Source: Octopus bimaculoides
Lineage: Eukaryota
Direction: 5' to 3'
NCBI RefSeq assembly: GCF_001194135.2
Contig: NC_068982.1
Coordinates: 16,813,727 to 16,849,891 of the forward strand
DNA length: 36,165 nucleotides
This document shows positions 16,572 through 29,592 of this stretch, in pieces (the stretch's first letter is position 1; each line of letters starts with the position of its first letter). Made by a program: the position numbers and the translations under genes. The notes beneath the pieces were generated by a model. The model saw only the letters and a list, made by a program, of their open reading frames with translations. It was not told the origin of the DNA and did no database searches.

Positions 16572-16724
16572 GCACAAAGAATGGCCCTATCTGGTAATAT
16601 AGAAGGCGCACAGGAAGCAAACGCTGGTGCAGGAAGACTAATCAAAATATCAGTGGTTGTGGGTTTTCTCGTTATTATCATTATAATTATTCTACGCGTC
16701 GTTTTGATTAGATTAATAGCATGA
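16572..16724 (+). CDS. Gene A last coding exon: CD225 loop and C-terminal TM helix
   Basis: ttttatcttctag| AQRMALSGNIEGAQEANAGAGRLIKISVVVGFLVIIIIIILRVVLIRLIA* (TGA 16722-24). Contains the GxxxG motif GNIEG and a long hydrophobic helix. Confidence 0.9.
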   Translation, partial: AQRMALSGNIEGAQEANAGAGRLIKISVVVGFLVIIIIIILRVVLIRLIA

Positions 16725-16853
16725 ACATGAAAACTGACATTAAACGAAGAGGGATTTCTTTTTTTTTTTTTATGTTTAATTCTTATCAGATAAAATATTC
16801 CTAGCAAAAATGTTCCAAGATATTGGGAAATCCACACAAATGATATATTTCAT

Positions 16854-16859
16854 AATAAA
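16854..16859 (+). promoter_or_regulatory. Candidate polyadenylation signal of gene A
   Basis: First AATAAA, 130 nt after the stop codon. Confidence 0.45.
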
Positions 16860-18167
16860 TTATATAATTTCAAATATTGAACAATGATATATTCTGATCG
16901 GTGACTTCTACAGCTCCAACTTGATGGCAAGACCCTATAATGGAGTAACACTATGAGAGTATAGTGATGTTTCTGAACCACTTGTACCGTTCCTTCCGTC
17001 CAACTTAATTACCCAAGAAAGGTGATGTTGCATCTTGCTTTTACTTGAATGTTCTTTATCATAATCTCAGGAACTACCAAAGTTTATAAAGCCATTTTAG
17101 AAACATAAATGTTAAACAAACAAAATTTTTAAGCTATTTCCTAGTTTATCAAAATATTGCTTTAAAGACAGTATTTTATTTGAGCGTTAAATATTCATGT
17201 AATATGGTTTAACATAAAATTGACTGTTACGCATTGACAAACGTTGCTATAGCTATACATGTCAATACAAGATTCTAGATAATGGTAGATAGAAATAGCT
17301 AAGAGTGAAAACTACATTCAAATATTGACCACAAATGTAGAAAAATATTTCTTGTAGCTTTCATTCATAAATATTTTTGTTAATATTCGTTTAAATATTT
17401 CTTGTTATTATGTCAAACAATGGCAAGTGGAGTTCACAACAAACATACGAATGACATTTTGCAAACAAGAAACTAAATCTCCAGCACAGAAAAGATGTAA
17501 GGACAGCAGCAGAAGATTGGGTATCTACCCTTATAAAACGGAAAAAGGAAGTTGCTAGCAGGTGATTACCAGTTTTGAAACCGTACACCTGAGGTACAGT
17601 CTGTGGATTTACCACCAAACTAAGCGACACGCTGACACCAATCGCCATCAAATTCAAAGCTAAATTATAACCACACGAATACGATAACATTTTATAAACA
17701 ATCTTTTCAAGTATTAGATGTGGTTGGTATTTTGTAAAAATGAAAATAATGATTTTATTGTACTTCAATAGTTTTATTTCCAATGTGGTTATTGAATTTT
17801 AGCATATGTAATTCGTCTTTAGAACATCTCAATAAAATTCAATTTTTTTAACAATTAATTTTATAACAAAATAATAGTTATCACCAACAACAACAATAAT
17901 AATTACACCACTGGAATATACGGTGCAGTACAGCTAGATTCGGATGAATGCCTTCGAGTTACCACCGAAATTCGCTACATATTAGAAGGTCAGAAGAATT
18001 AATTGTTTGTCCGAGATTGATGAAATGTTCTTAAAAATAAGATGGAAGTAAGGATAATACAACAACTATAACAACAACATCAACATCAACACAAACATAC
18101 GAAATCAAATCAACAACAATTATAAAATCAGCGATGATAACAACAATCACAATAACAACAATAAAAA

Positions 18168-18360
18168 GGCGGCGAGCTAGCAGAAAGGTTAGCACGCCGG
18201 GCGAAATGCTTAGCGGTATTTCGTCTGTCTTTATGTTCTGAGTTCAAATTCCGCCGAGGTCGACTTTGCCTTTCATCCTTTCGGGGTCGATAAATTAAGT
18301 ACCAGTTGCCCCCCTCCCCAAAAACTTCGGGCCTTGTGCCTAGAGTAGCAAAGAATAACA
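18168..18360 (+). mobile_element. tRNA-derived SINE with a short internal deletion, embedded in (AAC)n-rich repeats
   Basis: GGCGGCGAGCTAGCAGAAAGGTTAGCACGCCGGGCG head, GAGTTCAAATTCC B box, tail GCCTTGTGCCTAGAGTAG. Confidence 0.85.
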
Positions 18361-18539
18361 ACAATAACAGCAACATCCCCTCTCACACACACACACACAC
18401 ACACACGCACTATACCAACCACAACATCACACACACCGCCAGCAACGCCCACTACAATAACAACAACGAACACACCACCACTACCACTACCACCACCAGC
18501 AACAATAATCCCAGTAACCGTAACAACAACTACAAGGTT

Positions 18540-18900
18540 TTTAACATCGGTAGCACCCTACACTGTCTTCTAGAATCCCAACAACAAAACATACAGCATG
18601 ACGTGGTTCTACCCGACAGATTTATTCTTCGACAAAAGAGGTGTGTATCCCACTACAGAATTACATTGAGACAGAGTCAAAGGTTTCCTTAGTTAGAAAT
18701 AGACTCCGACACATCTTGGACCGATATAACAAAACCACTAAAAAACATAACTCATCTGGTGAGTGGTGGTGTGTGAAGATCTAGCTGTAAGTGGTAGTCT
18801 CCTGAACGTTATGAAATATAGCCAAAAGAATTGATTCGGAACAGGACTGGAAGATTTATTAGACGAATCTAGAACAGCTGGTAAAAAGGCAAACCTTCTC
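18540..18900 (+). mobile_element. Old RTE-type LINE endonuclease relic
   Basis: Frameshifted peptides NPNNKTYSMTWFYP, FILRQKR, SWTD and EDLLDESRTA resemble the RTE APE region. Confidence 0.4.
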
Positions 18901-18920
18901 GTTTGAGTCCTGATTCTTCT

Positions 18921-26831: not shown

Positions 26832-26962
26832 ATAATAATAATAATAATAATAATAATAATAATAATAATAATAATAATAATAATAATAATAATAATAATA
26901 ATAATAATAATAATAATAATAATAATAATAATAATAATGATGATGATGATAATAATAACAAT
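26832..26962. repeat. (AAT)n microsatellite
   Basis: Directly visible. Others: (TGG)n about 30293-30323, (GAAA)n about 35253-35328, (AAT)n about 35940-36016. Confidence 0.95.
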
Positions 26963-27319
26963 AATAAAGGCACAAGGTGTTATTAAAAATTTCTTAAGTC
27001 ATAAAGCCACAACATAATTTTTGATGAAGAGTTTAATGCTTTATTTCATTGAATGTTGATCACATATAATGTAGAAGGTGATTTATTGTGCGTTTACAAA
27101 TGTTAAAATGTTATCATTCGCTTATAAAATGTATTAGTTAGAATGTAGAATCATCTCTATAAGGGTAAATACTTTGAGATGTCGTTTTAAAACTAATAAC
27201 ATATGCTAAAGTTTAATACATAAATTGAAAATAGAATCATTATTATATAATTATTTTAAGGTTTGTCGTGAACTCTACGTCTTATTCTGTGACAATATCA
27301 AAAGAAATATCAAACCCAA

Positions 27320-27488
27320 TCGTGTCTGTCATTATGTTCTGACTTCATACTCCACTGGGGTCAACTAAGCCTTTTATCCCTTAAGGTCGATGAACTAAGT
27401 ACCATTAGAGCAATGGGGCCGATGTAATCGATTATTTCCCTCCCTTAAATTTTTTGGCACTGTGCCTATAGTAAAAAGTATTATTATC
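27320..27488 (+). mobile_element. Decayed, 5'-truncated SINE (same family as 18168)
   Basis: GGGGCCGATGTAATCGATTATTTCCCTCCC..CACTGTGCCTATAGTAAAAAGTATTATTAT. Confidence 0.65.
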
Positions 27489-27903
27489 TAAGATCTTGCG
27501 TCGACATGTATAGAGAGAATTGTGAATGTATTTGTGTAACTGGTTTTGTAAATGTGTGTGTAATTAGTGTCTAGTTCATAGTCAAATTTAAGGCAACGTA
27601 TCGGGAAACAAGGAAACATTTTAAAAATATGTTTTGCTTAACAATTGTGTTTAAAAGTGATTTTAAAATTTAATTCTTTCTGAGAATGCGATAAAGAATA
27701 TTCAAGTAAAACGTGTAGAACATCACCTAATGCTTTAGTGGATGATTAATTTGAACAAAAGGAATGGCACAAATGGTTCAGGATAATCTGTAAAGACTCG
27801 TGGCTTTACTCTTTTATTGGTTGTAGCCATTAAGCAGACGACGTAGAGTTCACCGAACAGAATACATATCACTATTCAATATCTAAAATTATATCATTTA
27901 TTA

Positions 27904-29256
27904 CACTGGTCAACAAAATAACGGACATAAAATTTTAGAGCTGTTTTAGACTAAGTTTTAGGTACTGATTCCAAAACTGGCCTTAGATTTGCTCTATCAC
28001 ATCATATTTTTGTGCTATAGGTATATACCTTTATTTACCTGGAGCGTACCAAAAGTTAATTTTACACCACTATTTGCGAGAATTTTGTCTGAATTGTCAT
28101 GTTAATTTTGAGTGTGTTCAAGCTGAGTTTTGCTTTAAAACTCTTGTTCTTCTTTTCAGGCTTGAACTGAACCACTGTGATCTATTTATGGCTACAGCAT
28201 CAAAAAGAAGGACGTGCTCTAATGAACCCGATGTCTTCTGTTACGCCTGTGGAAACTACACTCCACCGGCTCAAAGGCACAACATTAATAACTTTGCCAA
28301 GAAGATGTATCATACTAACAGTAAAGTAGCACTTGGAGATCAGGACAAAACCTGGTCTCCTCCACAAAGTTTGCAAAATCTGTGTTGAAATTTGGTGTGA
28401 TGAAGCAGTCCATAAAAGCTCTTAATCGCAGTGGAGATTGCTTCAAACACATATGTACAAGCTTTCCAAGTCTCAGTGACGAGAAAAAGGCAGGAATATT
28501 TGATGGACCTCAAATAAAAACACTCCTCAGGGATCGACATTTTGTTATAACAATGAATGCGGCGGAGACTAGAGCTTGGAATGCCTTCTCTGATACGGTG
28601 CGGAATTTCCTTGGGAACAGGAAAGCTGACAACTATCAAGAGATTGTGGAGGAGCTGGTCTTGAGTTTGCAAGCACTTGGATGTAGAATGAGCATTAAAT
28701 TGCACTACTCACATAATCACTTCGGTGAGTTGCCAAAGAACCAAGGTGATGTTAGCGAAGAACAAGGTGGACACTTTCATCAAGATGTAAAAGTAATGGA
28801 AGAATGCTATCAAGGCTGATGGGACTTAAACATGGTGGCAGGTTATTGCTGGAGCTTGCTAAGAGATATTCCAGAAGCTGTGCACAAAAGATCGGCAAAA
28901 AAGAGGAAGTTCTTGCAAGATGATCAGAATGAATGACCACAATGAATAGAAATTTTGTTTCATATTTTGTTATAACGAAGCTTAATGTTTACATACTAAC
29001 GTGTATTTACTCCTACAACTTTGTGTTTTGATTAATTAGATTTGAAAAAGGACATATTGTATATTAGAAATTACATTTACGTGAGTTTAATTCTTCCATT
29101 ATAAGCATTGAATAGCTGTTTCTAGCAAAACTAAGATTTCATGTTTCAAAAATCTGATATTTAGACAAAATATGATGCCAGATTTGGATTCAGCACCCCA
29201 AAATTTGTTAAAAATCATTGATAAACCTTGTGCCAGAAAATATGTATTGACCAGTG
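27904..29256 (+). mobile_element. CMC/Chapaev3-type DNA transposon, both ends, internally deleted transposase
   Basis: TIRs CACTGGTCAA / TTGACCAGTG with 3-bp TSD TTA (27901-03, 29257-59). ORF from ATG 28188: CSNEPDVFCYACG, LGDQDKTWSP, then a deletion, then LKFGVMKQ, GIFDGPQI, MSIKLH, VSEEQGGHFHQD, YQG*WD. Family assignment from recalled motifs and the CAC/TWA signature. Confidence 0.8.
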
Positions 29257-29427
29257 TTATGAAATGCATGTTGATTAGAGTTCTTGATATATTTAAACAA
29301 TAATTCTAAGAGTATTTTATATGATTAGACTTAAACATGAACTAAAAGAAAAAATGAAAACACTTCATTAAGTATGAATCTTCTGAATTTTCTAATGCCT
29401 TCTTTCAGTTATGGACAAGACTACTAT

Positions 29428-29592
29428 TTAGTAGTAAATTACTGTAGTTTGAGTAATTCTTAAAATTACCAGTGTAGTATAAAGGACAATCCCAACAATA
29501 CCAACAATAATTGATACTTTGATAAATGTTTTTGCTTGATTGTTAGCTTCCAGTGCACATGCTATATCTCCATTTCGGACCAATGTGTTTGC
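29428..29592 (-). CDS. Gene B (CD225/dispanin paralog) last coding exon
   Basis: ttttatcttctag| ANTLVRNGDIACALEANNQAKTFIKVSIIVGIVGIVLYTTLVILRITQTTVIYY* (TAA 29430-28). Same acceptor context and phase as the gene A last exon. Absent from the ORF track. Confidence 0.9.
   Translation of the reverse strand, partial: ANTLVRNGDIACALEANNQAKTFIKVSIIVGIVGIVLYTTLVILRITQTTVIYY

Follow-up and report, generated by a model that had tools for sequence, protein, structure and literature searches.

The DNA analyzed here (the window; 36,165 bases, 37% G+C, six assembly gaps) is the region of Octopus bimaculoides chromosome CM046602.1 (assembly GCA_001194135.2) at positions 16,813,727-16,849,891, read on the + strand. 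Comparison of the window with itself by BLAST reveals a collinear inverted duplication, which represents two convergent, tail-to-tail paralogs of the CD225/dispanin family, designated by us ObiL (+ strand) and ObiR (- strand); the match between 15947-16327 and 30640-30225 (E = 6.5e-69) is far above chance. A preliminary description of this DNA proposed that the coding exons of the two copies have diverged more than the adjacent intron DNA, possibly under diversifying selection. Results of our analysis indicate that the pair belongs to a rapidly diversifying cluster of octopus genes that has not been described before.

The convergent gene pair and the cluster around it

The relevant features of the two genes, in window coordinates, are the following:

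10390-10715 (+), ObiL exon 2, found by tblastn with the annotated protein P0004; splice sites tttcttttacag/AT and ATT/gtaagc
11212-11322 (+), ObiL exon 3 (111 nt, 37 codons, phase 0), with a Pfam CD225 match
15947-16257 (+), ObiL copy of a conserved block of intron 3, containing the 87-nt stretch compared in the preliminary description
16329-16470 (+), copy of a repeat resembling a short interspersed nuclear element (SINE) in ObiL intron 3, 78% identical to 29862-29717
16572-16724 (+), ObiL last exon (exon 4; 50 codons and TGA, stop codon at 16722-16724), from translated comparison and Pfam
16853-17166 (+), ObiL 3' flank, a probable untranslated region, aligning with the 3' flank of ObiR
17300-27480 (no strand), intergenic DNA between the convergent genes, with many dispersed repeats and the gap 26360-26802
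27587-27903 (-), ObiR 3' flank, homologous to that of ObiL by strict local alignment
29428-29592 (-), ObiR last exon (exon 4; 54 codons and TAA, stop codon at 29430-29428), identical to residues 106-159 of P0004
29717-29862 (-), SINE-like copy in ObiR intron 3, at the same relative position as the ObiL copy
30305-30640 (-), ObiR copy of the conserved intron-3 block, from local alignment with the ObiL copy
35722-35832 (-), ObiR exon 3 (111 nt, 37 codons), from translated comparison
past the window end (-), ObiR exons 2 and 1, at 27555-27748 and about 10001 of the chromosome locus L001, on which P0004 was mapped

ObiR is the annotated 159-aa protein P0004, named "proline rich transmembrane protein 1B-like", and the three exons found for ObiL comprise 195 uninterrupted codons. 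All splice sites of exon 3 and of the last exon are canonical (AG/GT) in both genes. Exon 2 of ObiL, the first 2 nt of which complete a split codon, codes for the proline-rich N-terminal region, exon 3 for the pre-membrane segment and the first hydrophobic segment AILVSLFCFLPTGIAALIYA, and the last exon for the loop, with its G-N and A-x6-A motifs, and the second hydrophobic segment. TRF detected 9.7 tandem copies of an 18-nt unit that codes for (PGYPPQ)n at 10496-10667 in exon 2 of ObiL, which is 326 nt long vs. 194 nt in ObiR; the length of the proline-rich N-terminus therefore changes through repeat expansion.

Database searches and locus look-ups in three octopus genomes allowed us to gather six further intact paralogs with their genomic DNA. 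These paralogs, together with the last exon of another gene, are located as follows:

L002, O. sinensis genes A and B (OsiA, OsiB), in tandem
L003, O. vulgaris gene C (OvuC)
L004, O. sinensis gene D (OsiD)
L005 and L006, O. bimaculoides genes E and F (ObiE, ObiF), respectively, a convergent pair located on the chromosome of the window at a distance of about 0.3 Mb
L006, last exon of O. bimaculoides gene G (ObiG)

At 16.47-16.55 Mb of CM046602.1 (L005, L006), P0150 (+) and P0155 (-) form a second convergent CD225 pair, accompanied by another CD225 gene of 132 aa. Altogether, at least five CD225 genes are present at 16.47-16.87 Mb of this chromosome and at least three on O. sinensis CM016860.1. 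The CD225/dispanin cluster of O. bimaculoides CM046602.1 spans at least about 0.4 Mb and has tandem counterparts in O. sinensis and O. vulgaris. Its genes originated through repeated local duplication, with the exon structure and open frames kept in all of them. The splice structure is the same in all eight genes, which have four coding exons, including a tiny start exon and a Pro-rich exon 2. The intron bases flanking the splice sites (gtaagtaaaata after exon 3 and ttttatcttctag before exon 4) are near-invariant in eight or nine paralogs, and at the relevant sites (window 11323-11334, 16559-16571, 29593-29605 and 35710-35721, and the same sites in L002-L006) they are better conserved than the adjacent codons. 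According to simulation, the probability that 155-195 codons stay free of stop codons under neutral substitution (d = 0.10-0.25 per lineage) is 0.2-8% per gene, and eight genes are intact; the genes of the cluster are therefore not long-standing pseudogenes. Our search of a literature library found no paper connecting CD225 or IFITM genes with cephalopods.

Two observations concern the tandem genes of O. sinensis. The protein annotated as 'isoform X4' (P0101) joins exon 2 of gene A (L002 13569-13724) to exon 2 of gene B (47426-47611) inside the PQPGYP repeat, at a junction devoid of a GT donor, and is probably an annotation chimera of the two genes. A partial additional copy of exon 3 (NQELEYFTFKLTAAILVTIFC) is present in gene B at L002 52575-52640, about 50 nt upstream of the true exon 3.

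Divergence of exons, introns and flanks

Our recount of the hand counts in the preliminary description gave the same figures. The intron stretches 15961-16047 and 30626-30540 are identical at 78 of 87 nt, and the first 31 codons of the last exon at 63 of 93 nt and 13 of 31 aa, with silent differences in three of the conserved codons; in the 111-nt exon, 16 of the 37 codons are replaced and six of the 21 conserved ones differ silently. The contrast between exons and introns extends past the hand-picked 87 nt, and thus is not an artefact of one chosen stretch, as indicated by strict local alignments, from which non-coding identity and divergence (K) of ObiL and ObiR were derived:

intron-3 block, 15947-16257 vs. 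30640-30305: 261/306 identical, 85.3%, K = 0.164 +/- 0.025
SINE-like repeat near the block: 110/141 identical, 78%, K = 0.26 +/- 0.05
intron and flank directly adjoining the exons: 306/395 identical, 77.5%, K = 0.27
3' flank: 231/309 identical, 74.8%, K = 0.31

Identity of the coding sequences is 69% in exon 3, 59% in exon 4, 63.6% in both of them together, and 68.1% in all aligned codons. The exons (64-68%) are indeed more diverged than the flanks (75-77.5%), but part of the contrast with the intron comes from the block, the conservation of which is unusually high in at least six paralogs. Between ObiL and ObiR, about 85% of intron 3 is unalignable, and much of the unalignable part in ObiR has copies elsewhere, so that it resembles transposon insertions. 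The segment to which the preliminary description assigned the contrast (16572-29592) holds the two last exons and the intergenic DNA, and does not include the 111-nt exons or the intron stretch.

The ratio of nonsynonymous to synonymous divergence (dN/dS) of ObiL and ObiR, calculated by the method of Nei and Gojobori (NG86), is 0.89 for the 68 codons of the preliminary description (dS 0.44, dN 0.40) and 0.73-0.80 for larger sets (0.73 for the 87 codons of exons 3 and 4, 0.77 for 151 aligned codons), which bears out the earlier estimate of a value near 1. For the first 31 codons of exon 4 taken by themselves, the ratio is 1.48. Maximum likelihood estimates of the same pairwise ratio (omega) range from 0.46 to 0.95, depending on the codon-frequency model. 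At four-fold degenerate sites, K is 0.36 (10 of 35 sites differ; 0.37 when pooled), which is about equal to dN (~0.39) and slightly above the K of the intron (0.16-0.31). A dN/dS well below 1 combined with a dS that matches intron divergence was not found for this pair (NG86 0.73-0.89). For five genes of the family, ten of the ten pairwise dN/dS values are within 0.63-1.32. Judging from these codon comparisons, the cluster evolves at about the neutral rate overall.

The intron-3 block occurs in intron 3 of six paralogs (ObiL, ObiR, OsiB, OvuC, OsiD, and ObiG) and has no other copy in the ~275 kb sampled. Among five genes its K is 0.18-0.27, vs. an exon K of 0.34-0.58 for the same pairs, and its core holds invariant runs. 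The tree of the block places ObiL with OsiB (257 of 500 bootstraps) and ObiR with ObiG, a clade of ObiL and ObiR being recovered in 30 of 500; the exon tree agrees (22 of 500). The grouping of ObiL with an O. sinensis gene and the occurrence of the block in at least six paralogs indicate that no conversion tract specific to ObiL and ObiR, considered in the preliminary description as another source of the similarity, underlies the likeness of their introns. Independent insertion of a transposon into both introns is ruled out, since the block is collinear with the exons, occupies the same intron in six paralogs, and is absent elsewhere in the sampled DNA. Constraint may act on the block; alternatively, the block may simply be ancestral intron sequence that evolves at or slightly below the silent rate. 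Searches for a structured RNA gave no Rfam match at the gathering score in the window, and a permissive Rfam scan gave matches at chance level only (mir-2335 with 22.6 bits at a threshold of 90, SNORD65 with 17.2 at a threshold of 41). The RNAalifold signal on the block is weak (z = -1.5 to -4.2 at -2 to -6 kcal/mol, with the best z of -4.2 on -4.2 kcal/mol).

All six copies of the block contain an antisense stop-free frame of about 40 codons (LLLDIMEQT.ITGDPLYK.P.HNYYNH...; window 15916-16050 on the - strand and 30477-30656 on the + strand; columns 60-215 of alignment A1), in which the indels are of 3, 12, and 24 nt. An antisense coding exon is not supported: most differences between ObiL and ObiR replace an amino acid, ObiL and OvuC have stop codons just upstream, and there is no Pfam match.

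Possible selection among the paralogs and competing explanations

The Goldman-Yang site models M0, M1a, and M2a were applied to exon 3 and the first 36 codons of exon 4 of eight genes. Under M0, omega is 0.87. Comparison of M1a with M2a gives a likelihood-ratio test statistic (LRT) of 16.9, with 19% of sites at an omega2 of 3.4; across the eight-gene settings, 16-27% of sites fall into a class whose dN/dS is 2.4-4.5, at an LRT of 11-20. The individual values are 11.4 with F1x4 frequencies, 19.5 on an alternative tree, 12.9-15.1 with the ends of exon 2 added, 20.0 when only the 60 codons of safest alignment are used, and 7.7 + 9.2 for the two exons when, to allow for recombination in the long intron, each is given its own tree. 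Of 46 data sets simulated under M1a (parametric bootstrap), none gave an LRT as high as 16.9, and the largest value was 11.4. Sites of high posterior probability, in ObiL numbering, are located shortly before the first hydrophobic segment (exon 3 residues 10, 12, and 14) or correspond to the penultimate residue of exon 3 (residue 36) and to positions 6, 14, 19, and 22 of exon 4, in the loop; one further site is in the second hydrophobic segment. The called sites are charged or polar positions of the loop and of the juxtamembrane segment. Thus, a class of sites with dN/dS above 1 in the loop, as anticipated in the preliminary description, finds support in the test on eight paralogs, and so do sites of this class in the segment just before the first hydrophobic stretch. 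Conserved throughout are the core A-I-L-V-T-L-F-C-F-L-P-T-G-I, the G-D/N motif, and the A-x6-A motif. The proteins of the cluster are mosaics, in which a strongly conserved hydrophobic core is set amid positions with a rate of change equal to, or higher than, that of silent and intron sites, and the overall dN/dS of about 0.7-0.9 is a consequence of this mosaic structure.

On the basis of the codon models, we lean towards the explanation that the genes form a paralog cluster in which a minority of sites has been under diversifying selection after duplication, with constraint relaxed elsewhere. The excess of amino acid change at about one in five sites would reflect such selection, acting before the first hydrophobic segment, at the junction of exons 3 and 4, and in the loop, and the remaining change would be due to relaxed constraint in two regions, the proline-rich N-terminus and the second transmembrane segment. 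Within intron 3, the final ~0.6 kb, chiefly the ~310-nt block, would be ancestral sequence kept in at least six paralogs at a K of about 0.18-0.27; evolving at or below the rate of silent sites, it would make the intron look too similar. Conflict with pathogens, as in the case of IFITMs, is a possible selective agent, one candidate suggested by analogy.

Several points weigh against this explanation. For the CD225-domain codons of ObiL and ObiR, omega = 1 is not rejected (twice the log-likelihood difference 0.02-1.8), neutral drift fits equally well, and this pair alone cannot separate neutrality from positive selection. The site models were run in our own implementation and not in PAML or HyPhy, on a short alignment (60-108 codons) of high divergence (tree length of ~6 substitutions per codon), and recombination among paralogs can be a source of false positives in site tests. 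The LRT drops to 7.0 when only the five closest genes are used. The simulated null has a heavy tail, with six of 46 M1a replicates above 5.99, and chi-square p-values are therefore too optimistic; the LRT of 11.4 obtained with F1x4 frequencies merely equals the largest null value. Finally, ObiL has no detectable start exon in the window and is absent from the protein database, so it could be a recently disabled copy. We regard the evidence for a positively selected site class in the cluster, as it emerges from these models, as moderate and subject to these caveats.

One of the other explanations is relaxed constraint only, i.e., near-neutral drift at most positions with selection confined to the frame, the hydrophobicity, and a short core motif. 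Pairwise omega values of 0.7-0.9, which are neither above 1 nor different from it, agree with it, and so do the prevalence of I/L/V/F exchanges in the second hydrophobic segment and of repeat-length change in the Pro-rich exon, the heavy-tailed null, and the low five-gene LRT. However, this explanation is M1a itself, and M2a fits better with each of the data sets and trees used (LRT of 11-20 for eight genes), the observed value not being matched by any simulation under M1a; moreover, the called sites are in the loop and the juxtamembrane segment and not in the hydrophobic helix. On balance we consider it unlikely, if not by far. A little more probable, although still doubtful in our judgment, is that the contrast is driven by the intron, the ~310-nt block being a functional non-coding element (an intronic enhancer, a splicing element, or an RNA) under purifying selection next to weakly constrained exons. 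At least six paralogs, with exons that are 34-58% diverged and an intron that is mostly unalignable, have kept the block in the same position; the K of the block is about half of the NG86 dS and below the four-fold-site K of 0.37; and its core has invariant runs and does not recur as a dispersed repeat. On the other hand, its K is not significantly below that of the neighboring SINE (0.26 +/- 0.05) or of the flanks (0.27), neither the Rfam and RNAalifold results nor the Pfam search with the antisense frame point to a function, and a dN that equals or exceeds the four-fold-site K would be left unexplained.

Decay of ObiL, in which its fast change would be pseudogene drift in a degenerating or recently disabled copy, seems improbable to us. 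Neither a pattern search nor BLAST queries taken from six paralogous exon-1 regions revealed a start-codon exon in the 10.4 kb upstream, and the ObiL protein has no entry in a database of 5.8 billion proteins in which ObiR and other paralogs occur. Yet a 10-nt exon 1 could be hidden in one of three upstream gaps (4096-4760, 6615-6829 or 7927-8225), the 195 codons are uninterrupted and bordered by canonical splice sites (an open frame under neutral drift has a probability of 0.2-4%), and all pairs that exclude ObiL also show high omega. The least probable of all, to a degree that makes it very hard to uphold, is recent gene conversion between the inverted copies that homogenized a tract of intron 3 and made the intron look younger than the exons. 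Paralogs in inverted orientation and separated by about 13 kb are well suited to conversion, and ObiL and ObiR are nominally the closest pair for the block (84.1-85.3% identity vs. 77-82% in other pairs). Nevertheless, in five genes from two species groups the block shows about the same degree of similarity (K = 0.18-0.27), the ObiL and ObiR clade is poorly supported by both the block and the exons, and the exon-adjacent and 3' flanks are also more similar than the exons, so that the effect is not limited to one tract.

Rapidly diversifying, locally duplicated genes are a well-known mark of molecular conflict or of novel functions specific to one lineage, and CD225 proteins include the antiviral IFITMs of vertebrates as well as regulators of synaptic receptors and of vesicle fusion. 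If the signal of selection is true, the cluster is a testable candidate gene set for cephalopod immunology or neurobiology. Clustered, rapidly diversifying gene families are already known as a kind, and the octopus CD225 cluster adds to them. It is also conceivable, by analogy, that the cluster comprises independently expanded innate restriction factors that target membrane fusion or vesicle traffic and are engaged in an arms race against viruses or other intracellular parasites, the intron-3 block serving as their shared on-switch, but we consider this a speculation with a small chance of being correct. To our knowledge, octopuses have no interferon system. In more general terms, the exon-adjacent intron is better conserved here than the exons, and therefore the use of alignable intron as a neutral yardstick needs to be checked against other paralogs.

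Family relations, repeats and assembly gaps

The assignment of both genes to the dispanin family is supported by matches to the Pfam CD225 model (PF04505; gathering cut-off 27.1), with 58.5 bits (E = 7.3e-16) for ObiL and 68.4 bits (E = 5.7e-19) for ObiR. Dispanins are characterized by two hydrophobic segments, a short basic loop, a long N-terminus, and a short C-terminus (PMC3282796). In the translations of ObiL and ObiR, read by eye, a first segment AILV[ST]LFCFLPTGI.A..YA is followed by a loop of ~22 residues and a second, I/V/L-rich segment. The position of the intron in the loop, which leaves the hydrophobic segments on separate exons, is conserved in the family (PMC3282796), and the junction of exons 3 and 4 directly follows the first hydrophobic segment in all eight octopus genes. 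Motifs known in dispanins are G-D and A-x6-A (both in the loop), a glycine conserved in the second segment, and a double cysteine (C-C or C-F-C) in the first (PMC3282796). The loop of ObiR contains NGDIA and ALEANNQA, that of ObiL contains SGNIE, with G-N replacing G-D, and AQEANAGA, and VG is present in segment 2 of both. The double cysteine is missing in ObiL, ObiR, OsiA, OsiB, and OvuC, which have a single one (F-C-F), and C-C is kept in ObiE, ObiF, and OsiD; this feature is variable within the cluster and is not demanded by the Pfam model.

The likeness to IFITMs drawn in the preliminary description probably does not extend to the level of subfamily, as the additional N-terminal exon and the naming of the best-scoring animal matches place the genes with PRRT1/TUSC5-like dispanins. 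Vertebrate IFITMs (dispanin A) share with them the CD225 domain, the small size with two hydrophobic segments, the occurrence in clusters of lineage-specific duplicates, and the conserved splice site between both hydrophobic segments (PMC3282796). Positive selection on IFITMs was detected by site models in primates, rodents, and bats, including at a site inside the CD225 domain (PMC3499546, PMC6907390). A codon class with dN/dS above 1 by LRT and clustered lineage-specific duplication are likewise shared by the octopus cluster and genes of molecular conflict. However, IFITMs are a vertebrate subfamily with two coding exons (PMC3282796), whereas the octopus genes have an additional proline-rich exon and a tiny start exon, as in subfamilies C and D; IFITMs have the double cysteine, whereas ObiL and ObiR have F-C-F; and the interferon system, inducibility, and antiviral action are features of the IFITM side of this comparison.

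Named animal matches of the octopus genes are PRRT1-, TUSC5-, and SynDIG1-like rather than IFITM, and the names given by NCBI to the octopus proteins are 'proline rich transmembrane protein 1(B)-like'. The genes share with PRRT1/SynDIG4, PRRT2, TUSC5/TRARG1, and TMEM233 (dispanin B-D) a long Pro-rich N-terminus followed by the CD225 domain. These vertebrate members are single-copy, conserved regulators of receptor or vesicle trafficking (PMC11798926, PMC12478428) and, in contrast to the octopus genes, are not known to form fast-evolving clusters; the placement of the octopus genes with dispanins B-D is one by architecture and match names rather than by established orthology. Invertebrate dispanins were found to be closest to subfamilies C/D, their exact position not being resolved in the same study (PMC3282796), and, according to another source, are poorly conserved and have no known role (PMC7653359). 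After octopus proteins, the best matches of the ObiR CD225 core (residues 82-101, window 35793-35734, - strand) are bacterial or metagenomic; the core AILVTLFCFLPTGIVAIVYA is at most 65% identical to metagenomic and actinobacterial proteins, and the family is known to be present in bacteria as well (PMC3282796). Unlike bacterial dispanins, the octopus genes have introns, are located on assembled octopus chromosomes, and have cephalopod paralogs, and therefore are not contamination.

The assembly gaps of the window are:

4096-4760
6615-6829
7927-8225
12604-13165
14112-14193
26360-26802

The last of them lies in transposon-rich intergenic DNA between both stop codons and is also present in the chromosome-level record: window positions 19428-36165 are identical to positions 50135-33398 of L001, with a 443-N gap common to both. 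It breaks no reading frame and no compared stretch, and makes only the distance between ObiL and ObiR uncertain.

The SINE-like dispersed repeat of ~140-230 nt is present many times in the window and dozens of times in the O. sinensis and O. vulgaris loci, the identity being 70-95%. Its copies in the window are:

10835-11003
16329-16482
18165-18308
19784-19983
20041-20217
27323-27507
29700-29862

An inverted pair resembling a long interspersed nuclear element (LINE), 21322-22272 vs. 26359-24516, is 75-78% identical and flanks open reading frames with retrotransposon-like sequence; its right-hand copy abuts the gap 26360-26802. A Pfam search with ten intergenic and intronic open reading frames gave nothing significant. 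An insertion of ~1.4-1.5 kb (27904-29427), which holds two open reading frames without a Pfam match (27987-28385 and 28325-28816), separates the stop codon of ObiR from the 3' flank that it has in common with ObiL. Finally, intron 3 of ObiR contains a weak match to the reverse-transcriptase family RVT_1 at 31384-31932 (E = 2e-4, below the gathering score).

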